Positions 49,849 through 64,000 of a stretch of 64,000 bases of DNA are shown here, in pieces; position 1 is the first letter of the stretch, and each line of letters begins with the position of its first letter. The stretch covers positions 574,371-638,370 of the forward strand of contig NW_003314278.1 of assembly GCF_000143415.4 (NCBI RefSeq). Direction: 5' to 3'. The notes beneath the pieces are model-generated. The model had not been told where the DNA came from. It did not search any database and worked only from the letters and a program-made list of their open reading frames with translations. Origin of the DNA: Selaginella moellendorffii. Its lineage: Eukaryota; Plantae; Lycopodiophyta. Both the position numbers and the translations under genes were made by a program.

Positions 49849-51445
49849 ATGCTCGCGTCGGGGCTGCGCCGGGGCGCCGGGGCGGCGGCTGGGAGGTTAA
49901 ATCGAGCGATCTCCGCCAACATTCTCACATCGCTGCTGCGCTGCCACAGCTCGCAGGTCTGTCGGATTTCTAGTTCCACGATCGTGTCTCGAGCTTGGAT
50001 TCCTGCATTGCCTGTTTATCCGGGCGGGGCGACGAGCCAGGAATACGTCGCTGCTGCCAGGAATTTCTCCGTCCAGGCCCGGGTCGAGAATGAAGAGATT
50101 GACGGTTTCTCCGTTCTTGCCAAAATGGTTGAGCCGGAGTTCGATGTGTTACAAGCGGTCGTGAAGTGGACAGAGAAGGGGCACGTTTTGTCCAGCGAAA
50201 CTTTGGCCAGGCTCGCTACTTGGATGGTCGAGAAGAGAAGGTTTGTCCAAGCTCTCAAGGTATGTTCTTTGTTTGGAAGTCTTCATGGTCTTGAGTTTTG
50301 ATTTTCCTTTGTAGCTCTTGACAGGTGCTAGAGAAAGCAGACTAGCAGAGGTGTCAGGCCAACTCCTTGCACTGGAGTTGGATTTGCTAAGCCGTCAGTA
50401 CAAATGCAGTCGTGTGGAGGCTATTTACAACACTTTCCCTGAGGAGCTGAGGACGGCTGACGTGAACAGAGCGCTGCTTTCGAGCTTTATAAGGGACAAC
50501 CGGGTGGAGAAGGCAGAAAAATTCTTGGAGAAAGGCAAAGTTTTGGACACCGAGGGATGGAACGTCGTGCTAGACATGTACTTGGCACGGGACAAACACA
50601 GGAAGCTCTTCAAAAGTTTGACGAGGATGAAGGAGTCTGGGGTCGAGCCAGACGCTAAAACGTACAGGATACTTCTGGTTTGCAGGGACGCCGCCGGTGG
50701 CTTTGAGGGAATCGAGGCAGACGCTCGAAAACGTCTGGAGGAGATTGACATTGGTAGTGCTCAAGCAGGAGTTCTCGAGGAGATGCTCGAAGTTTATGGT
50801 CATCTCCGAGAGATGGAGGCTGTGGACAGGATATGGAGCGCTCTTAAGGAAAGCCACCAGGTTGCCAAGGCCTGCTACGTGACGGCCATGAAAGCATTCG
50901 GAGTGGCTGGTGATGTGTCCCGTGCGGAGAAGGTCTTCCAGGAGCTGCTGGCTATCACGACGAGCTTCCCGAATCGCAAGCACAATCCATACGCTGCTAT
51001 GGTCGATGTTTATGCGAGGGCCGGGTTGATGGACGAGGCGGAGAAACTCCTCAAGGACAAGGCCGACGAGGAACTCAAAGACAGTTTTTGGTGTTACGAG
51101 TCTCTCGTTGCGGGCTACCTTTTGAAAGGCGACGCAAAGAACGCCCTGGGGAAGTTCAAGGGTGGTCTAGCTGCCGTGAAGAAGGGACCAACAAAGCTCG
51201 AGTACAAGTCCGTGATGGGTTTGCTAGCGGCTCTGGCCTTGAGGAGAGACGTGGATGAAGCCGAGAAGGTGATGGGTCACTACAGCTCCCTGTTTGGAGA
51301 GGCCCCTGTCTACAACCAGCTGCTCAAAGTCTACATTGCTGCCGGCAAAACTCCGAAAGAATTCAAGGAGAGAATGCTAGAGAGGTTTGTGGAGCCCGAC
51401 GAGGAGACTGAGAAGCTGTTACAGAACGTGGTAGCAGAGGTTTAA
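49849..51445 (+). CDS. P-class pentatricopeptide repeat protein, probably mitochondrial; exons 49849-50259 and 50315-51445 (513 aa)
   Basis: Arg/Ala/Ser-rich presequence, N-terminal W..KG...RRF.QALK module, 35-aa repeats (WNVVLDMY...MKESGVEPDAKTY; YAAMVDVYARAGLMDEAEKLL; VYNQLLKVY...M....VEPD), phase-0 GT-AG intron. Confidence 0.9.
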
Positions 51446-51465
51446 GTAGGGTTTTAGGATTCGAG

Positions 51466-53166
51466 ATGGGCACTGCTGCCTGGTGGATATGGAAGAGGCC
51501 AGCAGCAGCTTTTTGCAAGGTTGGTCTCTCGCCCAAGTGGGATCGCCGTGAAGCTTTCGCTCTTCCACCGTACTACACTAGCGAGAAGGCCAAAGCACCA
51601 GTTTCGGAACAGTCCAAGATGAAAGAGCTGAGGAAGTTTGTCCGGGAATTCAAGGGAGAGGAACCCAATGAGACTGCGGAGCAGGAGAAGGTTGTGAGCC
51701 TATGCCGGACTCTCAATGCTAAGGCCGACACTTCGGAGGTAGTCAAGAATTGGATAGCCGATGGAAATGTGATGTCACGGGACGTTGCTGCTAAAGTCTC
51801 TGGTTGGTTTCTTCACTGCAGGCACAACGTCCAAGCTCTAAAAGTAAGCATTGATTTTTCTGAAATGTTTTTCCTTGGAATGTTTGAACTAACTGCTGTA
51901 TTTGATGTTCTTTGGTAGTTCATGAACGTCGTGAGAGAAGAACGCCTGGTAGAAATGACCTCGAAGCTATACATGCAAGAGATCTCACAGCTATGTCTTC
52001 AGCTGGGGACATCAAAAGGCGAGGCTTTGTTCAGAAGCATGCCAGAGAGTTTGAGGACGGAGGAGGTAACCACGGCTTTTCTTACTGCTGTTGCGAAAGA
52101 GGACGACTCGGCCAGAGCGGAGAGATTGATGGACGAGCACAGCACGTTGTCCGTCGACGCCTGGAGCGCGGTTCTACACATGTATCTCAGAAGGGACAGG
52201 CACGACAAGCTGCGGGACACTTACTACAGGTTCAAGCAGAAAGGGTTGAAGCCGGTCCTTTTTACGTACTGGCTGGTTCTCCAGTGCCGAGAAAGAGTCG
52301 GCGGTTTTGAGGAGATTGAGATGGAGTTCGACGCGGAGCTGAAAAGAACTAACTTCGAAGAGGCAGACACACGGCTACTCAATCTAATAATGCGTTCCTA
52401 TGCACTCTTGGGAAAGCGGAAGATGGTGGACAGGATGTGGACGCTGCTCAAGAGCGAACAAGTTGCTGCTCCCGACTTAAACAGCTACATCTCCGCAATC
52501 AAGTCATTTGGTTTGTTCGGGGACTTGGAAAAGGCATATGAGGTGCTGGAGGAAGTGCTGCAAAAGTTCGAACGGATTCCTCAAAATCCATACATCTGGA
52601 TCGTGGAAATCTGCGTGAGGCTCAAGATGATCGACCAGGCGGAGAAGCTCATGGAGAAGCACATCGGCAAGAGCTGCTTTCTTCCCTACAACTTTCTGGT
52701 CACTGGCTACGTTGAAACTTCCCAGATCTCAAGCGCGCTCAAGAAGCTGGACGAAGCTTTCGAGATTCCTTTCAAGGACCGGAAGCTATTCTACAAGACA
52801 GTGATGGCTTTGCTCCCGGTGTTCGCCAAGAGGGGAGACATACACTCGGCCGAGAAGCTCATTTCCAACTACGGCTCCTGCGGTGACGTGAAAGTCTACA
52901 ACGCACTGCTCAACGTCTACGTTTCCACGAAGAGGATGCCAACCAACTTCCTTCACAGGATGAAGAACCATAACATTGGACCGAACGAAGAGACATGGAG
53001 ACTCATGGACACACTGGAATCGTTCTGGGATCACAAGCCAGGACGCAGTACTGTCTGGAGAGTCGTGAATGGGCGGAGGATATCTCGGGACCAGCAAATG
53101 GCTCACTTGAAGTTCTCCAGGGAAGGAAAAGATGTCAGGAACCGCGGCCTAATTCCAAAGAACTAA
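51466..53166 (+). CDS. Second P-class PPR protein, diverged paralog of the upstream gene; exons 51466-51843 and 51919-53166
   Basis: Same intron position (after QALK) and PPR motifs (WSAVLHMY...KQKGLKPVLFTY; VYNALLNVY...MKNHNIGPNEET). Confidence 0.9.
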
Positions 53167-53429
53167 GTATATCGTGCGCAGCAGTGACTGATCTAGAGGC
53201 AAGTTTTTCAACGTCTTTGTTGTTTCTCTTTGATTATTTCCTTTTTTTTTCTAGATTCTCCTCTTGCATGGATACTGGCTGCCATCTGTTCCTGGTGAAG
53301 TTACAAGTGTCAACCAAGCCGATGTTCTCCAAGTGGAGAAAATGGAGCGAACGATCGATCAAAACACAACAAGGAAAGGGAAGAAATTAGCTCGCTAGCT
53401 CTTTGTTCTTTTCAAAGCTTCTCACTATA

Positions 53430-54683
53430 ATGAACGTCATCGCGCAGGCTCTAGATGAGAAACTTGGGAAGGTCCCGGTGGCTCAAGGCTCGACGAGGCC
53501 AGCAACATCAGACACGGAGGTGATGCGAGCGATTACATGGCAGGGAAAGAAGAAGGTCTCGTGCGACAAGGTCCCCAAGCCGCTCATCACCCATCCGAAG
53601 GACGTGATCGTCAAAGTCACTGCTTGCACTATTTGCTCCGGCTCCGACTCTCACATCTACGGTGGAGAGATTCCTGACACCTCCAAGGGCCAGATTTTGG
53701 GACATGAAGGCTGCGGTGTGGTGTCCGAGGTGGGAGAAGCGGTGACCAAGTTCAAGGCCGGGGACCGAGTGGTCATTGCCTTCGGCATCGCTTGTGGCGA
53801 CTGCGACTACTGCAAGCGCGGAGAGTTCACAGGCTGCGACACCACCAACGATTCCAAGCTCATGGAGCTCATGTACGGTCACAGGCACTCCGGGGCCTTC
53901 GGCTATGGAAACTTGGTCGGTGGCATCCCGGGCTCGCAGGCCGAGTTTGTCCGAGTCCCCTTCGCGGACGTGAACTGCTACAAGATCCCGGACGAGGTCC
54001 CGGACGAGAAGGCGCTCTATCTCTCCGACGTCCTGTGCACGTCCTACCACGCCGTGATGCTGGCCGGGGGAGTGAAAGCTGGTGAAAGCGTGGCTATCTG
54101 GGGGCTGGGACCGATCGGGCTTTGCGCCGCGAGGTGGTGCCAGATTATGGGAGCTTCCAAGGTGATCGGGATAGATTTCGTCAAGGAGAGGCTGGAGGTG
54201 GCGGAGAAGAAGCTGGGGATCACAGTCATCGATCGAAACTCCGTCAAGGACGTTCCAAAGAGGATCTTTGAGCTGGTTCCTGGTGGAGTGGACGCGAGCA
54301 TCGAGGCGGCGGGGTTCCGGTTCCCTGTGAGTATCCTTCACAAGGTGGAGCGCACGGTGGGGTTGGAGACCGACACCGCGGACATTCTCAACGAGTTGTT
54401 TCTGGCGACGAGGAAGTGGGGGCGGGTGTCCGTGATCGCGGACTACCTTGGCTACTGCAATCACTTTGGGATCGGGATGGTGATGATGAAGCACTTGACG
54501 CTGCGAGGGGGGCAGTGCCCGTGCCAGCGTTACTTCGACACGGTGATGGACCACGTCAAGAGTGGAAAGTTTGATCCGAGCTTCATGGTTTCCCACAGGA
54601 TCAAGCTGGAGGACGCGCCGGAAGCGTACCGCAAGCTCTTCAACAAAGAGGATGGTTACATCAAAGTCTTTATAGAAGTGTGA
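53430..54683 (+). CDS. Zn-dependent medium-chain dehydrogenase, glutathione-independent formaldehyde dehydrogenase-like (YbdR/AdhB type), intronless, copy 1
   Basis: CSGSDSH, GHEGCG, structural Zn site CGDCDYC-x7-C, LSDV (Asp ligand), GLGPIG Rossmann motif, ERTVGLETDT insertion. Confidence 0.9.
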   Translation: MNVIAQALDEKLGKVPVAQGSTRPATSDTEVMRAITWQGKKKVSCDKVPKPLITHPKDVIVKVTACTICSGSDSHIYGGEIPDTSKGQILGHEGCGVVSEVGEAVTKFKAGDRVVIAFGIACGDCDYCKRGEFTGCDTTNDSKLMELMYGHRHSGAFGYGNLVGGIPGSQAEFVRVPFADVNCYKIPDEVPDEKALYLSDVLCTSYHAVMLAGGVKAGESVAIWGLGPIGLCAARWCQIMGASKVIGIDFVKERLEVAEKKLGITVIDRNSVKDVPKRIFELVPGGVDASIEAAGFRFPVSILHKVERTVGLETDTADILNELFLATRKWGRVSVIADYLGYCNHFGIGMVMMKHLTLRGGQCPCQRYFDTVMDHVKSGKFDPSFMVSHRIKLEDAPEAYRKLFNKEDGYIKVFIEV

Positions 54684-54759
54684 GAAATGTGAGAAGGGAG
54701 ATACTTATTAAGTTAGTTTTTAAGTAAGTAAATGTATATAGATTCCTTGGAGTTTAGGG

Positions 54760-55075
54760 CGAAGCTAGCTATGGCGCTCTTGTCGGGCTGTGCTCTATGT
54801 GAATTTGGAGGTGGATGGAGCTGCCGCTACGAATGCGGCGATCAAGGAAGCTCAAACTGGTAAGCCAAGCCCAAGAGCGGAGAGAACGATAAGCTTTCCA
54901 TTTTCCTTCTTTCGCTTCTCTCTCTCTCTCTCTCACGATAAGCTTTTCATTTTTCTTCTTTTGCTTTCATGTTTTCACGTTAACACTTCTCTTGCTGTAT
55001 AGTGAATGTGAATCTGGGAGGCTCGAGCTCCATGACCGCCGATGCAAAGAAGAAACTCTTGTGAATCAAACGAGG
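54760..55075 (+). pseudogene. Collapsed fragment of the RSRC2/SMAP-domain gene
   Basis: NLEVDGAAATNAAIK.AQT, the following intron and the MTADAKKKLL exon match 58288-58611, with deletions. Confidence 0.85.
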
Positions 55076-55109
55076 CCGTGGTGCTAGGCAAACAAGCTGC
55101 CGACTCAGT

Positions 55110-55935
55110 TTTGTTTCAAAAGCATGCCAGAGAGTTTGAAGTTTGAGGCAACCACGGCTTTTCTTACCGCTGTTGCCAAAGGGGATGACTCGGCCAGAGC
55201 GGAGAGATTGATGGACGAGCTAAACAGCTCGTTGTCCGTCGACGCCTGGAACGCGTTTCTACGCATGTATCTCAGCACGACAAGCTGCGGGACAGTTACT
55301 ACAGGTTCAAGCAGAAAGGCCTGGCTGGTTCTCCAGTGCCGAGAAAGAGTCGGTGGTTTTGAGAAGATTGAGATGGAGTTTGACGTGGAGCTGAAAAGAA
55401 CTAACTTCGAAGAGGCAGACACACGGCTACTCAACCTGATAATCCGTTTCCTATGCGCTCTTGGGAAAGCGGAAGATGGTGGACAGGATGTGGACGCTGC
55501 TCAAGAGCGAACAAGTTGCTACTCCAGTCCTTTGGTTTATTAGGTGCTGGAGGACGTGCTGCAAAAGTTCGAGCGGATTCCTCAAATTCCATACATCTGG
55601 ACGAGATGATGGACCAGGCGGAAGCTCATGGAGAAGCACATCGGCAATAATTGCTTCCTTCTCTGCAACTTTCTACCGGAAGCTCTTTTGGTGGCTTTGC
55701 TCCAAGAGGGGCGACATACACTCGGCCGAGAAACTACGGCTCCTGCGGTGACGTGAAGGTCTACAAACGTCTACGTTTCTAGAAAGAGGATGCCAACCGA
55801 CTTCCTTCACCGGATGAAGAACCACAACATTGAACCCAACGAAGAGACGTGGAGGCTCAGTACTGTCTGGAGAGTCGGATAGCTCACTTGAAGTTTTCCA
55901 GGGAAGGAAAAGAAATCAGGAACCGCGGCTTAACT
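55110..55935 (+). pseudogene. Decayed duplicate of the second PPR gene (exon 2)
   Basis: Colinear with 52030-53166, with many small deletions and frameshifts. Confidence 0.9.
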
Positions 55936-56178
55936 CTAAGTACGTGCGAAGCAATGTTTCCTTGTTCTAGATTTGTCCACGCATATACTTGCATGCATGG
56001 ATAGTGGCTGCCACCTGTTCCTAGTTGAAGCTACAGGTGTCAACCAAGCCGAAGGTCTCCAACTGGTGAAAACTCGAGTGGACGATCGATCGAAAATCTT
56101 CTCGGGTTTCTCCACGGCAACCAGGAAAGGGAAGAAAGCTCGCTAGCTCTTTGGTTTTCTCAAAGCTTCTCACTCGCT

Positions 56179-57435
56179 ATGATGAACGCCGCCGCGCAGG
56201 CTCTAGATGAGAAAGTTGGGAAGGTCCCGGTGGCTCAAGGCTCGACGAGGCCAGCAACATCGGAGACGGAGGTGATGCGAGCAATTACATGGCAGGGAAA
56301 GAAAACAATTTCGTTGGACAAGGTACCGAAGCCGGTCATCACGCATCCGAAGGACGTGATCGTCAAAGTCACTGCTTGCACCATTTGCTCCGGCTCCGAT
56401 TCTCACGTCTACGCCGGAGAGGTTCCCGACACCTCCAAAGGCCAGATCATGGGACACGAAGGCTGCGGTGTGGTGTCCGAGGTGGGTGAAGCGGTGACCA
56501 AGTTCAAGGCCGGGGACCGAGTCGTCATCGCCTTTGACATCGCCTGTGGCGAGTGCGACTACTGCAAGCGCGGTGAGTTCACAGGCTGCGACACCACCAA
56601 CGACTCGAAGCTCAGCGAGTTCGTCTACGGTCACAGGCACTCTGGCATCTTCGGCTATGGAAACTTGCTCGGTGGAGTTCCTGGCTCGCAGGCCGAGTTC
56701 GTCCGAGTCCCCTTCGCGGACGTGAACTGCTACAAGATCCCGGACGAGGTCCCGGACGAGAAGGCGCTCTATCTCTCCGACGTCCTGTGCACGTCCTACC
56801 ACGCCGTGATGCTGGCCGGGGGAGTGAAAGCTGGTGAAAGCGTGGCTATCTGGGGGCTGGGACCGATCGGGCTTTGCGCCGCGAGGTGGTGCCAGATCAT
56901 GGGAGCTTCCAAGGTGGTCGGGATAGATTTCGTCAAGGAGAGGCTGGAGGTGGCGGAGAAGAAGCTGGGGATCACAGTCATCGATCGAAACTCCGTCAAG
57001 GACGTTCCAAAGAGGATCTTTGAGCTGGTTCCGGGAGGAGTGGACGCGAGCATCGAGGCGGCGGGGTTCCGGTTCCCTGTGTCTATCCTTCACAAGGTGG
57101 AGCGCACGGTGGGGTTGGAGACCGATACCGCGGACATTCTCAACGAGTTGCTTCTGGCGACGAGGAAGTGGGGGCGGGTGTCCGTGATCGCGGACTACCT
57201 TGGCTACTGCAATCACTTTGGGATTGGCATGCTGATGATGAAGCACTTGACGCTGCGATCGGGCCAATGCCCGTGCCAGCGCTACTTCGACACGGTGATG
57301 GATCACGTCAAGAGTGGAAAGTTTGATCCGAGCTTCATGGTCACTCACAGGATCAAGCTGGAGGACGCGCCGGAAGCATACAGCAAGCTCTTCAACAAAG
57401 AGGATGGTTACATCAAAGTCTTCATAGAAATGTGA
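56179..57435 (+). CDS. Zn-dependent medium-chain dehydrogenase (FDH-like), intronless, copy 2
   Basis: 418-aa ORF with the same motifs as copy 1. Confidence 0.9.
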   Translation: MMNAAAQALDEKVGKVPVAQGSTRPATSETEVMRAITWQGKKTISLDKVPKPVITHPKDVIVKVTACTICSGSDSHVYAGEVPDTSKGQIMGHEGCGVVSEVGEAVTKFKAGDRVVIAFDIACGECDYCKRGEFTGCDTTNDSKLSEFVYGHRHSGIFGYGNLLGGVPGSQAEFVRVPFADVNCYKIPDEVPDEKALYLSDVLCTSYHAVMLAGGVKAGESVAIWGLGPIGLCAARWCQIMGASKVVGIDFVKERLEVAEKKLGITVIDRNSVKDVPKRIFELVPGGVDASIEAAGFRFPVSILHKVERTVGLETDTADILNELLLATRKWGRVSVIADYLGYCNHFGIGMLMMKHLTLRSGQCPCQRYFDTVMDHVKSGKFDPSFMVTHRIKLEDAPEAYSKLFNKEDGYIKVFIEM

Positions 57436-57705: not shown

Positions 57706-58994
57706 AGGTGGAGGAAGAAAATCGCGAGCACGAGCAGCTGCGGCGGCATCACTCGTCGAGGTCGAGATCGAGCTCGCCGGGAGCGGATGATTCAGGTAAT
57801 ATTGCTTGTCTGGGAAATATTTCGAGCGTTTGGCTGAGCGATGGCGGGCGATTTCACAGGTAAGCGCGCCAGGAGTCCTAGAAGAGAGGACGAAGCGAGG
57901 GTGAGGCACAGGGAATCGGACAGAGAGAGGTCTCGGGGGAGCCGGCATTCTCACTCGCATTCGCATTCTCACTCTTACGGCGGCAGAGATAAGGAGCGTG
58001 AGAGGGATCGCGAGAGGCGGGAGAGGGAGAGGGATAGGGATAGAGAGAGGGACTGGGAGCGGGGCCGGGAAAGGTCAAGGGACGAGCACAGGGAGAGGGA
58101 TCGGTCGAGAGGAAAGGAAAGGGATGATCACGGGAGGCACAGGGACAGTCACAGGGACAGTCACAAGCGCAAGGAGAGAGACGAAGGGAGTAGCGGCCAA
58201 GGAAAAAGCGCCAAATCTCCCGACAATGGGAAAGAGAGAGTCGAGCTCGAGCACAATGGTGTCGAGGCTCGAGCAGCGCAAAATGAGAATTTGGAGGTGG
58301 ATGGAGCTGCCGCTACGAATGCGGCGATCAAGGCAGCTCAAACTGGTAAGCCAAGATCATTTTTCTTCTTTTGCTTTAAGCTTTCTCTTTTCTTCTTGCG
58401 CTCTCTCTCTCTCTCGATTCCAGTTTTCTTCTTTTGAGAGAGGACGATAAGCTTTCCATTTTTCTTCTTTTGCTTTCATGTTTTCACTTGAGAGAACGCT
58501 AACACTTTTTCTTGCTGTATAGTGAATGTGAATCTGGGAGGTTCTAGCTTCATGACCGCCGATGCAAAGAAGAAACTCTTGTGGTCTGGAAAGCGTGCCG
58601 AATCAAACGAGGTGAGAGAAGTTTCCTTTTTTACTCTTCTTTAAGAATGTGTCTCTACAGGGGCCTCCCCCGGCTGGAAAGAGCCACTGGGACACCGTCC
58701 AATTCGCCGACCGGGAGAGGCAGGAGAAGTTCCACAAACTTATGGTAAGTAAGCTTTTGGAGGTTTCCTGCCAGTGATGAAACGTGCTAACGCTCCTACA
58801 GAGCCTGAGTGTGGTTTGCTGCTCCTCTACGTTTGCAGGGATTAAAATCCAACCAAGGCAGCGGCGCTCCAGCGGCGGCGGTGGCGGCGGCTGTTCCTCA
58901 GGACAAGCATCGCGTCGTCCAGGAGGATCTGGAGAAGCAGTTCTCGGCTGGGTTGCGGCGACGCGATGGTCGAACGGTGGGCCTGGGATTGTAA
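57570..58994 (+). CDS. Arg/Ser-rich coiled-coil protein 2-like (RSRC2-like, C-terminal SMAP domain), 5 exons
   Basis: polyQ and RD/RE-rich exons. Spliced C-terminus MTADAKKKLLWSGK...HWDTVQFADRERQEKFHKLMG...DLEKQFSAGLRRRDGRTVGLGL is typical of plant SMAP proteins. Splice phases checked at 57795/57860 and 58345/58523. Confidence 0.85.
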
Positions 58995-59146
58995 CCAACA
59001 TTATGCTTGTTTGTATCGTGTGCTTGTCGAATAGAAGTTCCTTCTCGACTGCTAAACAAAATTTCTTTTTCTTTGTCAAAGCCATGGCAAATAGATAGAA
59101 ACGCTGCTTACTCTTTGTGCTTGTCTTGGAAGTTCATCGTCTTGGG

Positions 59147-61299
59147 TTAGAAGTTTTTGCTCACTTGCCGTCCTCTCAGATCTTGTGTGGGCCTCGCGTT
59201 GTACTCCTGTGTAGAGAAAATGTTGTTTAGAACTAGGAGAATGCTCGGTACAAGAATACCTGCATCGCGGTCTTGATGATGTTGAACTGATCATCAGAAG
59301 CTGGGACAACCTGCAAGGATGGAATTCAAAAAGGTTGTTTGGGTGTGAGAGAAAGAATAAACCTCTGTCATGACGGTCCAAATGACATTTTGTGTGCACG
59401 GAGGTGTTGTCAATGAGCCCCAGTAACGAAAGAAACTGGTTCCCAAGTTGAGGTTGTTTGTGTTGAGTTGAGTGGTAGGCTTCCACTTGATGATCTAGAG
59501 AGAGAGAGAGAGAGAGAGAGCATAGTGCTAAGTATGCATGAAAATGTCATTTGAGATGCTTACCTCATTGAGAAATGGATTGGTGACTTGACCCGAATCG
59601 TAGAGAACGGCAATGACAGCATACGCTCCCTGGTCTGATAGAAAAATCATCTGCATCTCCAGCTTGTACCTGTTCACAACAGTCGTGAGGTATTTCGCAT
59701 TTTGTTTCAAACCTTGTCGAATCGATCATGTGTTCGCTGGGCATATGAAAATGAATCTTGTAGAGCCTGAACTTTTGGGCAGCGATAATGAGATTGCCTC
59801 CTGGAAGAAGAAACTCTAGCTGAAGTAGAAACAGCGGTTAAACTCTAGCTAGCACTTAATGTCAAGCAAACCTGATAGATATAGCGACCCGACTTTAAGC
59901 TTCCCATGGGATATCCAAACACTTTCTCAAGAGTAAGAGACTTGTCAACCTGTGCGTTTGCACTCACCAGGTCAATAGGGGACTGCCGGTCGCCTGAGTT
60001 GCAGAGAAACCAATCCTTTGAAACTGCTCCCCAGTTCAGTGGCCCCTTTTTACCGTTTGTATAGTCATATACTGCACACAAAAGCCGCGCAGTTTTAGAA
60101 GATTGAAAGCAGCGGAAAATGCCAGCCAACCTGGAGCTTCTACAGTCATTGCGCCGATCAGTTCGTCATAATTTATCACATTCGGCTTGGACTTTTTCGA
60201 CGCACCCTTCGGCTTCATTGCTATGAGAATCACTGTCATGAGAAGTATCACAAAGCCAACACTGGAGCGAAACTACAAAGGCATAAATCTTCAGTACGAC
60301 AGGACCAAAAAGCATTGAAAATTACCTAGCACCGTAAAAGATGAGGCTGTTCTTGTCGGTCTTAAACGGGAGCTGGCTGAGCAAACTAGTAACAGTCGGA
60401 GCCACCTTCGTCTTAACACTCTCATACGCCACCTTCGTGTGATCCACGGCACTTTCCACCACGGCTCTGGCCTGATCATACGCTCTGACCACCGGTGGAG
60501 GCAACTTTTCTCGAACGGTCTGAAGAACACCCTCCACTGCCTCCCTGGTCTGATCCAAAACTTGGGTGGCTTTCCCATAAGCTTGGGTAGACTTCACAGT
60601 GTCCCAGGCGCCCTCCACTGCGTGCTTGGTGCGATCGTAAGCACTGTCCAATGCGTGCTTGGAGTGGTCGAGAGCGTCGCCCACCTTTATAGCATCCAGA
60701 GCGTGCTTTGTGTGGTCGTAAGCGTCGTGTAGAGCATCCCTCGCGTGGTCGTAAGCCTCGTGAACAGCTTGGCCTGCGTGGTCGTAAGCGTCGTGGATCC
60801 CAGACCAAGCATCATGATGCTGGGGCTGCTGTGGATCATGCTGTTGTGGATCATACTGCTGTGGATCATACTGCCCATGCTGCTGGGGATCATAATCCGC
60901 CTGGTAGTGCTGTGAATCATACTCGACATTGTGCTGCTGGGGATCATAGTACTGCTGCTGTGGATCATAGTGCTGCTGTGGATCATACTGCCCGTGAGGG
61001 TCATGAGCCTGGTCGAAATAAGCGTTGGGATCAAACCCTTGCTCCCGGAAATTCAGATCGTGCTCACCTCCTCCGCCGAGATGCTGCTGCTGCTGCTGCT
61101 CGTCGTAGGCTAGATGATGCGCGCTTGGATCAAAGCCCTCGATGTGTAGCGGATCGAGAGCCTCGACCTGCGGCTGCTGCTCCTGCCCGTAGTGATAGCC
61201 GCCGTGATCGCCATAGTAATGCTCGTAATCCTGGTGATACTCACCACTGGCATTGCCTTCCTCGTGGTGATCCCACAGCGCTGGATCTTGGTGCTCCAT
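59147..61299 (-). CDS. Membrane-anchored alpha-carbonic-anhydrase-like protein with long repetitive N-terminus (8 exons)
   Basis: Exon 1 (61299-60326) splices in phase to 60261, giving the TM segment LIFYGASVGFVILLMTVILIAM. Then YDYTNGKKGPLNWG...C..GDRQSPIDL, IHFHMPSEH, RYKLEMQM, RYWGSLTTPPCTQNVIWTV, NARPTQDLRGR, and a stop at 59149-59147. Confidence 0.82.
59497..59520 (+). repeat. (AG)n microsatellite forming the polypyrimidine tract of an intron in the CA-like gene
   Basis: Seen directly; abuts the minus-strand acceptor. Confidence 0.9.
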
Positions 61300-61584
61300 T
61301 CTCCTTGGAAATATTTTCTAGGGTTCTTAGCTAAACTGCTCCAACGAAATATTTAGTTTCGAAACTAGAATCTCCCGCCCAATAGATCCGTCGATGGTTC
61401 GATTCCCGGCCAGGATGGTTCTAAGACTGGAAGAGGAGCTGGGGATATAGCGCCAGGGCCCAGCCCTAGCGCCACGCTGGTTCTCCGATAGAGGTACTTT
61501 CCCTTGGCGCCTAGATTAGGGTATAGAGATCCGAGCTCCGCGCATCCAGAAGTCCTGGTCCGGCAGCACGGCAGCGCGGCGAAA

Positions 61585-64000
61585 ATGCCGTCGGCATTCA
61601 AATCCTCGCCCAGGCACCAGATCAACATCAAGGAGAATGGAGTGGCAGCGATCGAGGAGGCAGCGCTTTCCAGGCGCGGGTCGGGCGATTTCGGCTACGA
61701 CGAGGATGCTTTCACGCGGCTCAAGGTAGCGCAGGATTGCCTCATCGAGGATCTCGAGTGCAAGATCGTGGTTTCCAGCGTCGTAGGGCAATCCGTGCTG
61801 AGGGGTATTGTGAGAGCTCTCTCGGATGAGTCTCTGGCTCTACTGGCCGAGAAGAATGCGGAGATTGGTCGGCTGGAGAGCGAGAAGAGCCGGGCAGCGG
61901 AGGAGAGCTCGTCGAAGATGAAGAAGCTTGCGTCGGAGTTTCTGGAAAAGATGAAGGAGAACGAGATGAGTCTGCTGGAGAAGGAGCGGGATCTGTCCAA
62001 GATGGCGGAGAACTTGATAGACTTGACGTTCCGGTTGCAAGGGGAGAGCCTTAACAGTGTTGCTCTCGAGAAGAAGATCAAGGACATAGTTGCTAGGGAC
62101 TCCGGCAAGCAAAGGAGGATCAATGCTCTCAGCGAAGAGATCGAGGACTTGAAGCGGGAGAGGAGCTCAGAGGTTGAGATGCTCAGGAGTGAGATCAGGA
62201 TCAAGGCGGCCAGGCACAGAGAACAACTGGAGGAGGTGGCTGCGGAGAACGAGGCCCTGAGAGAAGAAAACTTGGAACTAGTGTCCACGATTTCGGCGCT
62301 GGAGAAGGTGAACGAGGAAGTTTGCCATTTGATCGAAGCTCAGAAGGAAAGCATGGAGGCAATGGAGGGTCTCCAGTCACGTCTCGAGGAAGAGAGAACG
62401 CAGCATGAACAGGAGATAAACATTCTTATGGATGTTTACGAGGGGCAAGTCGAGGACTTTTATAGTCACAGGAAGGTGGAACATGAAACGGAGATGGACA
62501 AGGCTTCTCTCGGCACAGACGAGTCTGTTAGTATACCGGGTAGCGGAGAAAACACGATGTCTCAGCAACAGGTGGTGGACGAAATGACGAAAATGGCGAT
62601 GCATGAACTAGAGAAGGAGATCATACTAGACTGCTTCACGGGCTTTTCTGAGGACATCAGGGACGCTGCGGACTTTGATCCGGGGAGGGCGCAAGGGACG
62701 GACATGGCTCGCCAGGGATCTTTGGAATTCCAAAAGTATGTTCGGTACTGCAAATCTCGAAGTCGAGCACGACTTCCCAGTACGACATATGTTCCTGAAG
62801 GGCTTATAGAACAACATCATCAGTACCAGATTGAATTGGACGTTCTTCTTGAATATTTTGTGAGGAAACTTCAGGAGCTTGCGAGCTCCGGTATTGGGAG
62901 GTCCGACTCGATTAGTACCGAAGATGTTGGAGGTCAAACCGTTTCGCAGGTTGCCGATCTTCAAAGAGAAAACGCAAAGCTACGAAGGGAAAAGGAACAG
63001 GTTTTGGTAGAGAAGACGGAGGAAATGTTCAGGTTGAAGCGGGATTTCTTCAAGGAGCTTGATAAACTGAAGCTGGAAGGCGGCCAGTACGAGTTTGGAA
63101 TCTTGAAGAAGCAATTTGCTGATAGCAGACAGAAGCTGGACAGGATTCTGGACAAAAGGCAAGGTGATTCTTGTCAACCATCCCCAAGCGCTTGCATCGA
63201 CGAGCACAGCGACACGGACAGTGTGTCGTCACGCAGTGAATCGTTTACGAATGACTACGGAAGATTCACGGAGGAGTTACCCGTTCTAGTTTCCGAGCTC
63301 CAAAATGATATTCAGCAGCTGATGCTGGACACTGGAATGGCCAAGCCAGATGACAGCACTCAAAGAACACAGTCAGATGTTCAGCACGACTTGAGTGTCT
63401 TGAGTATGGAATACGAATCTGCACTCAAAGCGCTAGAGGACGAGAAGCGTCAGAACTTCGCTTTCACGGTAGAACTTCAGGAGTTGGAACACAATATAAA
63501 TCTTTCGAACGGGGAGCTGGAAAGACTCTTGAAGCAAATAGAGATGGAGAAGCAAGCAAGGATGAACAAGGAAGGGGAGTTGCAGAACGTTAAGCAGGAC
63601 GCATGTCTGATCAAGCGGCAGTTAGACGTCGTGCTTGCTCAGCTAGAAACTGAAAGGGCTCACAAGACGCGCATAGGATCCGAGCTAGAACTTGCAACTC
63701 AACGGCTAGAATCACTACAGAAGGAGCTGAATGACGTGCTAAAAGTGAAGGCGGCAATAGCAGAAGATCACAAAAAACTACGTGGTGAAGTAAGCGCCCT
63801 TCATCGAGGAATTTTTGATACCCGCAACGATCTGCGACAATTCATCGAAAAAAATATGAAGACCGTAGCAGAGAATTTCGCGACTGTGGGACGAACACTT
63901 GAAGAAAATGATGCGAGGTTTGCCATTTCTATCTGTTACCACAGATTGACTTGCTGTGAAACGTGCAGAATCGCGAAGCTCAACAAGCGGATGGCGTCCT
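61585..64000 (+). CDS. WPP domain-associated protein (WAP)-like long coiled-coil protein, runs off the window
   Basis: Reading frame from ATG 61585, read at the start, at internal points and at the end; probably missing from the ORF track because it has no stop in the window. Motifs VSSVVGQSVLRGIVRALSDES...EKNAEI, EEMFRLKRDF and EFGILKKQF...KLDRIL resemble plant WAP. Probable in-frame 51-nt intron at 63918-63968. Confidence 0.75.
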   Translation, partial: MPSAFKSSPRHQINIKENGVAAIEEAALSRRGSGDFGYDEDAFTRLKVAQDCLIEDLECKIVVSSVVGQSVLRGIVRALSDESLALLAEKNAEIGRLESEKSRAAEESSSKMKKLASEFLEKMKENEMSLLEKERDLSKMAENLIDLTFRLQGESLNSVALEKKIKDIVARDSGKQRRINALSEEIEDLKRERSSEVEMLRSEIRIKAARHREQLEEVAAENEALREENLELVSTISALEKVNEEVCHLIEAQKESMEAMEGLQSRLEEERTQHEQEINILMDVYEGQVEDFYSHRKVEHETEMDKASLGTDESVSIPGSGENTMSQQQVVDEMTKMAMHELEKEIILDCFTGFSEDIRDAADFDPGRAQGTDMARQGSLEFQKYVRYCKSRSRARLPSTTYVPEGLIEQHHQYQIELDVLLEYFVRKLQELASSGIGRSDSISTEDVGGQTVSQVADLQRENAKLRREKEQVLVEKTEEMFRLKRDFFKELDKLKLEGGQYEFGILKKQFADSRQKLDRILDKRQGDSCQPSPSACIDEHSDTDSVSSRSESFTNDYGRFTEELPVLVSELQNDIQQLMLDTGMAKPDDSTQRTQSDVQHDLSVLSMEYESALKALEDEKRQNFAFTVELQELEHNINLSNGELERLLKQIEMEKQARMNKEGELQNVKQDACLIKRQLDVVLAQLETERAHKTRIGSELELATQRLESLQKELNDVLKVKAAIAEDHKKLRGEVSALHRGIFDTRNDLRQFIEKNMKTVAENFATVGRTLEENDARFAISICYHRLTCCETCRIAKLNKRMAS

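Follow-up and report, generated by a model that had tools for sequence, protein, structure and literature searches.

A candidate chimeric gene of Selaginella moellendorffii predicted to join a histidine-rich repeat region and a transmembrane helix to an alpha carbonic anhydrase-like domain

The alpha carbonic anhydrases (alpha-CAs) of plants, such as Arabidopsis alphaCA1-8 and the Lupinus 'alpha carbonic anhydrase 4-like' protein (P0015), begin with short signal peptides; in the homologues used here these N-terminal signal peptides end about 10 residues ahead of a GPxxW motif. Dioscorin, the yam tuber storage protein (PDB 4twl/4twm), adopts the same fold, and a dehydroascorbate-reductase-type activity has been reported for it. 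Among animal proteins, CA IX combines an acidic PG-like region with a CA domain and a transmembrane helix, and RPTP gamma/zeta carry a non-catalytic CA-like domain that binds ligands. Nacrein, an alpha-CA of the mollusc shell matrix, is a secreted protein with a Gly-X-Asn repeat inserted within the CA domain and with the zinc histidines kept; as a lead only, it resembles the protein described below in combining an alpha-CA domain with an acidic low-complexity repeat region. A review of plant CAs counts ten alpha-CA genes in the lycophyte Selaginella moellendorffii, giving the count only (PMC5226100). Here we analyze one alpha-CA-like locus of this species, located on the minus strand at 59147-61299 of a window of 64,000 nucleotides (nt; contig NW_003314278.1, positions 574,371 to 638,370). 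The locus is best read as one eight-exon chimeric gene that would encode, in order, a low-complexity region, amphipathic repeats, one transmembrane helix and an alpha-CA-like domain, the order proposed in an earlier note on this DNA. We hold the explanation built on this reading, taken as a whole, with moderate confidence, and consider it rather probable, on the sequence and the public gene models, that the fused mRNA is the main product.

The case for splicing and for a single gene was built on public gene models together with sequence logic. Exons were checked one at a time against the public models, and whole-protein analyses were performed on XP_024526535.1 (P0009), EFJ27406.1 (P0010) and XP_024532350.1 (P0011). 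The spliced chain runs from an ATG at 61299 to a stop at 59147, and its eight exons form one open frame of 1758 nt and 586 codons. A 325-codon open reading frame (ORF1, 60322-61299) and the alpha-CA fragments downstream of it are present as separate ORFs, as the earlier note had seen, and the translated fragments match Pfam PF00194 (59297-59446, E 2.1e-12; 59848-60129, E 3.3e-4). Exon 1 (61299-60326) ends in phase 2. The ORF1 stop TAA (60324-60322) falls within the GTAA of the intron 1 donor, so that the frame is open right up to the splice site. Intron 1 (60262..60325; 64 nt, GT..AG) has the same sequence in both haplotypes and contains an ATG at 60315 in another frame. The junction 60326/60261 reads AG/GTAATT ... 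CTCCAG/T, with slashes marking the splice sites, and the split codon AG+T encodes a Ser, giving 'FYGA-S-VGF'; this junction, postulated in the earlier note, is identical to that in three fused public models. The second phase-compatible intron also keeps the frame. Public models place it at 60131/60071 (donor CAG/GTTGGC, 59-nt intron); an alternative donor at 60206 (AGG/GTGCGT) is in phase as well, and its use would give a 134-nt intron, the loss of 25 residues and the sole non-AG/GT donor in the gene. In order, the introns measure 64, 59, 52, 43, 69, 52 and 53 nt, each with AG/GT...AG. Two other splicing candidates were ruled out. Skipping of exon 2 fails on phase, exon 1 ending in phase 2 and exon 3 requiring phase 1, and direct joining meets a stop. 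The donor CTG/GTGAGT at 59968, used in the Joint Genome Institute (JGI) model EFJ27406.1, deletes 32 residues that align well with homologues.

Phase compatibility by itself is weak evidence for joining exons. Further features point to a single product. The hydrophobic segment LIFYGA-S-VGFVILLMTVILIAM is complete only once exons 1 and 2 are joined: exon 1 ends with LIFYGA and two bases of the split Ser codon (60326..60345), and exon 2 (60131..60261, 131 nt) supplies the remainder S-VGFVILLMTVILIAM (60261-60216), followed by the Lys-rich linker KPKGASKKSKPN...TVEAP, in a translation found exactly in EFJ27406.1. The CA exons are not preceded by any in-frame ATG that would supply a usable signal peptide, and a promoter would find no room between ORF1 and the CA part, the distance from the ORF1 stop to exon 2 being 60 nt. 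The codon-usage score of the second half of exon 1 (60346..60825) is 0.417 in the annotated frame vs -0.226 and -0.634 in the others; for exon 2 the corresponding values are 0.535 vs -0.506 and -0.969.

An exhaustive phmmer search of 1.84 billion representative proteins with ORF1 returned a single cluster below E 1e-10, whose four members are all from S. moellendorffii. EFJ33101.1 (586 aa) and XP_024526535.1 (LOC9652069, 601 aa) come from the same scaffold, which is the other haplotype, and both are fused. EFJ27406.1 (554 aa, fused) and XP_024532350.1 ('alpha carbonic anhydrase 4', 247 aa, CA only) come from the scaffold of the window's haplotype, and the translation of each window exon is an exact substring of one or both of them. 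The fused gene is thus predicted by JGI on both haplotypes and by RefSeq on the other haplotype only; its UniProt entries are D8R4G9/D8RK96. Judged by sequence, the window gene is an allele of LOC9652069 and corresponds to the JGI model SELMODRAFT_412164. The earlier note had taken the architecture to be undescribed, which does not hold for the databases: it stands in GenBank, RefSeq and UniProt under the accessions just given, only as uncharacterised predictions, and no paper with the locus identifiers was found. Two other look-ups returned no match, these being a word-index search with exon 1, for which the 586-aa cluster representative lies just beyond the length limits, and an exact look-up of XP_024532350.1 on contigs.

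The alpha-CA domain comprises residues 369-586 of the window protein. In XP_024526535.1, PF00194 matches residues 393-601 over profile positions 2-254 of 254, with 103 bits against a cut-off of 27, and in the AlphaFold2 (AF2) model the predicted local distance difference test score (pLDDT) exceeds 90 over residues 385-601. The best Foldseek match is dioscorin 4twl (E 2.5e-22, TMt 0.78), followed by bacterial alpha-CAs; dioscorin, bacterial and human alpha-CAs give TMt values of 0.7-0.83. A maximum-likelihood tree, which contained no dioscorin sequence, puts the domain inside the plant alpha-CA group with 97/95 support; its stem, at 2.37 changes per site, is longer than any other branch. No other protein found is more than about 37% identical to the domain. 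The motifs are distributed over successive exons. Exon 3 (59872..60071), whose translation is found exactly in XP_024532350.1, starts the domain with YDYTNGKKGPLNWG and carries the first Cys of the disulfide pair, QSPIDL, and SGRY at the place of NxGH. Exon 4 (59713..59819) encodes HFH, which provides zinc ligands 1 and 2 (codons 59753-59745), and PSEH. Exon 5 (59564..59669) encodes EMQMIF, with Gln (CAG, 59653-59651) at the third zinc ligand and Phe at the next conserved His. Exon 6 (59363..59494; Pfam E 2.1e-12) encodes GSLTTPPC, which contains the Thr-Thr gatekeeper and the second disulfide Cys. The translations of exon 7 (59260..59310) and exon 8 (59206-59150, with the stop TAA at 59149-59147) were matched to the public models.

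We compared the active site with that of other alpha-CAs by aligning the domain with 25 homologues. HFH, PSEH, GSLTTPPC and both disulfide cysteines are kept. The equivalents of Glu106 and of the Thr199-Thr200 gatekeeper (E125, T196 and T197 in XP_024532350.1 numbering) fall in invariant columns, as do those of the disulfide pair Cys23-Cys203 (C53 and C200). The third zinc ligand, His119 in CA II numbering (ligands 1 and 2 being His94 and His96), is Gln on both haplotypes, with EMQMIF in place of ExHxVH, and is His in 25/25 homologues; the conserved His that follows it is replaced by Phe. The proton-shuttle His is missing as well, SGRY being aligned to N(x)GH; GH is present in the majority of the 25 homologues, with P0016, P0018, P0019, P0029 and P0040 as exceptions. 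The H119Q form of CA II is listed among variants with drastically reduced zinc binding (PMC10175565). Because the third ligand is Gln, the shuttle His is missing and the branch is the longest in the tree, a standard zinc hydratase seems unlikely from the sequence, which lends support to the suggestion of the earlier note that the protein could be something other than a simple enzyme; the sensor or scaffold role that the note put forward is speculative. Relative to plant alpha-CAs, with which it shares the PF00194 fold, QSPID, HFH, PSEH, GSLTTPPC and the Cys pair, the Selaginella domain is about 30-37% identical, has Gln as third ligand and has lost the NxGH and VH histidines, and the whole protein has some 318 lineage-specific residues and an internal transmembrane helix instead of a cleavable signal peptide. 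One homologue, P0016 (a Papaver armeniacum alpha-CA of 382 aa), also has an N-terminal extension, of about 150 residues, with an internal hydrophobic segment just ahead of the CA domain and a sequence unrelated to the Selaginella extension. Alpha-CAs with N-terminal extensions may be commoner than is assumed.

Dioscorin is the best structural match and the second-best PDB sequence match to the Selaginella domain, and it shares the His-to-Gln change at the third ligand ('LEAQLVH' vs 'LEMQMIF' in the HMMER alignment to 4twl). By report, dioscorin contains no appreciable zinc, and neither acetazolamide nor a zinc chelator inhibits its CA-type activity (PMC3943009). The likeness has limits, in that dioscorin, which has a signal peptide, is soluble and resides in the vacuole, has neither a transmembrane helix nor an N-terminal repeat region, and is about 30% identical. 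The shared Gln may be convergent. By analogy, a dioscorin-like or binding role could be suggested for the CA-like domain.

The N-terminal region (residues 1-318) consists of two kinds of repeat sequence, both encoded by exon 1. Residues 1-158 (60826..61299) form an acidic low-complexity stretch rich in Q, D, H, Y, P and G (Q 20%, D 13%, H 12%, Y 11%; 32 acidic residues and 1 basic), with degenerate YDPQQH-type repeats encoded by degenerate DNA tandem repeats of 15-21 nt. This stretch is predicted to be disordered, the AF2 pLDDT being below 50 at residues 13-187, and its length is polymorphic between haplotypes through in-frame indels of 3 and 48 nt. Residues 159-318 (60346..60825) contain about 14 His-rich 11-residue repeats of the AYDHxKHAL type, predicted to form amphipathic helices: lag-11 identity is 0.235, the hydropathy period is 3.75 (0/1000 shuffles reach the observed power), and a 33-nt DNA tandem repeat lies within the segment. 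AF2 places four long helices of modest confidence at 177-323. Pfam gave only sub-threshold matches to residues 159-318 (Perilipin, 14.2 bits vs a cut-off of 33; Apolipoprotein, 11.5 vs 90; DUF6781), and the ESM Atlas, queried with residues 170-360, gave no feature matches, just generic helical-bundle look-alikes. The exhaustive phmmer search found no relatives of the N-terminal region outside the S. moellendorffii cluster; the weak matches that it returned are to phage tape-measure proteins and others built on this type of repeat. Perilipins, apolipoproteins, phasins, group-3 LEA proteins and alpha-synuclein share the 11-residue periodicity and the amphipathic helix with residues 159-318, and compared with perilipin, apolipoprotein or LEA-3-type repeats the Selaginella repeat is unusually rich in His and Asp. 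This likeness to known 11-mer repeat proteins is one of repeat type, an analogy.

The fused protein has one candidate membrane segment, a hydrophobic helix of 22 residues at 319-340 (Kyte-Doolittle mean over 19 residues, 2.51). This single site accounts for all 12 hydropathy windows above 1.6, no other transmembrane segment was detected, and AF2 places a helix at 333-354 in XP_024526535.1 numbering. The Lys-rich linker occupies residues 341-368. The N-terminus is acidic and disordered and carries no cleavable signal peptide. We also considered a bipartite transit peptide for the chloroplast or thylakoid, which was ruled out, the first 318 residues being strongly acidic (56 D/E) with no twin-Arg or AxA around the hydrophobic segment. 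Given the fusion, a type II orientation is about as probable as not, with a slight lean towards it; the N-terminus would then be cytosolic and the CA domain lumenal or extracellular. The single helix of transmembrane length and the long N-terminal region are in keeping with this part of the earlier proposal. The only two cysteines in the whole fused protein form a canonical secretory-type disulfide pair, and in the opposite orientation a 318-residue N-terminal region must cross the membrane without a signal peptide. The charges flanking the helix speak for that opposite orientation: the flank before the helix carries +1 and the one after it +5, which under the positive-inside rule makes the CA side cytosolic.

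The mechanism that we propose would start with transcription from the divergent intergenic region ahead of ATG 61299. Once its seven short introns (43-69 nt) are spliced out, the transcript would encode a 586-residue single-pass membrane protein whose hydrophobic helix would serve as an uncleaved signal anchor. The CA-like domain, its disulfide pair retained, would most likely be lumenal or apoplastic, and the N-terminal region would stay cytosolic, with the amphipathic repeats laying it on the membrane surface. The CA-like domain would be expected to bind zinc poorly or not at all, and may serve for binding or redox chemistry, in the manner of dioscorin or of CA-related proteins, in place of fast CO2 hydration. 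The gene itself would be a young, fast-evolving, lineage-specific chimera.

Besides the flank charges, several observations weigh against this reading. RefSeq has on the window's haplotype only the 247-aa CA, starting from a Met just past the hydrophobic segment. No transcript-derived protein fragments over the junction were found when residues 270-404 of EFJ27406.1 were searched in the protein collection, and the locus identifiers are absent from two supplements of the Selaginella expression atlas. There are no orthologues of the fusion among the 1.84 billion representative proteins. The locus on the other haplotype is 98% identical to that in the window; divergence amounts to 1.14% in exons and 1.53% in introns, and of the codon differences 12 are nonsynonymous and 6 synonymous, numbers of low statistical power. 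Within that power, divergence between the haplotypes is near neutral and no clear purifying selection is visible.

This near-neutral divergence makes for a serious, if rather improbable, rival to the functional reading, in which the gene would be a chimera that is young, evolves fast and has little selected function. The fused RNA would then be real, arising when a decaying alpha-CA paralogue that had lost its signal-peptide exon was captured by an upstream repeat-derived ORF, and its protein would have little or no selected function. The lack of relatives of the N-terminal region, the 12:6 ratio, the nearness of exon to intron divergence, the loss of catalytic residues, the long branch of the CA domain and the length polymorphism of the repeat array all speak for this account. 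Set against it, the reading frame, all splice sites, intron 1 and both cysteines are intact on both haplotypes, the indels in exons (3 nt and 48 nt) are in frame and those in introns (2, 20 and 1 nt) are not, codon usage is gene-like, and AF2 gives the CA core a pLDDT above 90. Two of these length differences lie in simple repeats. Intron 5 contains a (CT)n microsatellite (59495-59530) with a 20-nt difference between the haplotypes. In exon 1 (60930-60990), the YDPQQH-type array differs by a 48-nt (16-codon) repeat unit, and because this polymorphism is in frame and consists of a repeat unit, the array is seen to evolve by slippage or unequal exchange.

It is unlikely, in our estimate, that the locus makes two separate products. 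One would be a soluble repeat protein, made from a transcript that retains intron 1 or ends there, and limited to 325 residues because the stop sits in the GTAA donor; the other would be a cytosolic CA-like protein of 247 residues without a signal peptide, starting from the Met of 'MKPKGASKK' as in XP_024532350.1. ORF1 does possess its own stop, and the Lys-rich stretch past the hydrophobic run suits a cytosolic location. The RefSeq model of the CA alone is likewise in its favor, and a CA encoded as its own gene from an internal Met is the case that the earlier note had named as telling against the fusion; here the public models are divided, the parts being fused in the three others. An independent CA gene would also have to find a promoter between the ORF1 stop at 60322 and the start of exon 2 at 60261, and on a shared mRNA the upstream ORF of 325 codons would block translation of the CA part. 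Moreover, the 247-aa model discards a hydrophobic helix that lies immediately upstream in the same frame, and the sole two cysteines are a pair of the secretory type.

A further ORF of 49 codons (60166-60315, minus strand) begins at ATG 60315 with the signal-peptide-like sequence MLFGPVVLKIYAFVVSLQCWLC, and a weak donor at 60234 would yield a conventional secreted N-terminus. The ORF may be a relic of an ancestral signal-peptide exon or a product of chance in T-rich intron sequence. That the locus encodes a classical secreted alpha-CA from this ATG inside intron 1, spliced from 60234 (ACA/GTGATT, phase 1) to 60071, is highly improbable: the donor is phase-compatible as read from the sequence, and GPLNW would stand at position 38 as in ordinary plant alpha-CAs, its distance equal to that in homologues such as P0014 and P0017, but the donor lacks the AG/GT common to all others, the intron would be 162 nt vs 43-69 nt, codon usage is against the frame (-0.506 vs 0.535 for the transmembrane frame), no public model uses it, and the ATG lies only 7 nt past the ORF1 stop with no promoter space.

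If the eight-exon fusion is taken as the product, CA IX and RPTP gamma/zeta, which are also among the PDB matches of the domain, would be counterparts in content: in them, too, a domain of alpha-CA fold occurs together with a disordered acidic region and one transmembrane helix. These animal proteins are type I, with the signal peptide first and the transmembrane helix after the CA domain, and CA IX has its acidic region outside the cell; in the Selaginella protein the helix lies ahead of the CA domain and the repeats are N-terminal, with no homology beyond the CA fold. A more far-reaching proposal, which we regard as quite unlikely, is that of a receptor- or scaffold-like CA-related protein of plants. 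Its zinc-site-variant ectodomain would be tethered by the signal anchor to the cytosolic His-rich repeats and the acidic Q/D/H/Y head, and would couple the sensing of an apoplastic or lumenal ligand, pH or bicarbonate to metal- or pH-dependent behavior at the membrane surface. Such a protein would be functionally comparable to RPTP gamma/zeta or CA IX and would have been built independently in lycophytes.

The gene has close neighbors on both sides. Upstream, a divergent intergenic region of 285 nt (61300..61584) separates ATG 61299 on the minus strand from ATG 61585 of a coiled-coil protein gene on the plus strand, and a gap of 285 nt between the two called genes is also present on the other haplotype. 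From the sequence, this region is the only plausible promoter space for the locus. The coiled-coil gene (61585-64000) is long and runs past the end of the window; its copy on the other haplotype encodes 869 aa and is without a recorded Pfam match. On the downstream side, a plus-strand gene at 57841-59098 encodes a protein of RS/RD-type low complexity that is rich in Arg, Asp, Glu, Ser and His and has 399 aa in its copy on the other haplotype. This gene is convergent with the CA-like gene, and about 49 nt separate the end of its coding region from the stop of the latter; the 3' ends of the two genes must therefore overlap. Further away, the plus strand at 49849-57435 holds a tandem duplication block of intronless genes. 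Two of its ORFs (50318-51445 and 51922-53166) are of a helical-repeat, PPR/TPR-like type, and there is a fragment at 55124-55543. Two more ORFs (53403-54683 and 56179-57435) are nearly identical to each other and of the zinc-type alcohol-dehydrogenase-like kind, with Pfam matches to ADH_N and ADH_zinc_N on the other haplotype.

The weight of these observations is limited by their coming from one species in the data at hand and by the lack of clear purifying selection between its haplotypes. If the fused protein is made, it would present a plant alpha-CA fold anchored by an N-proximal transmembrane helix behind a long lineage-specific repeat region, an arrangement on which we found no paper. 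S. moellendorffii would then join yam, with its dioscorin, as a second plant lineage in which a His of the zinc site has become Gln. The gene would also serve as a test case for zinc-poor CA-like domains in plants, and for young chimeras formed from repeat-derived ORFs and decaying paralogues.

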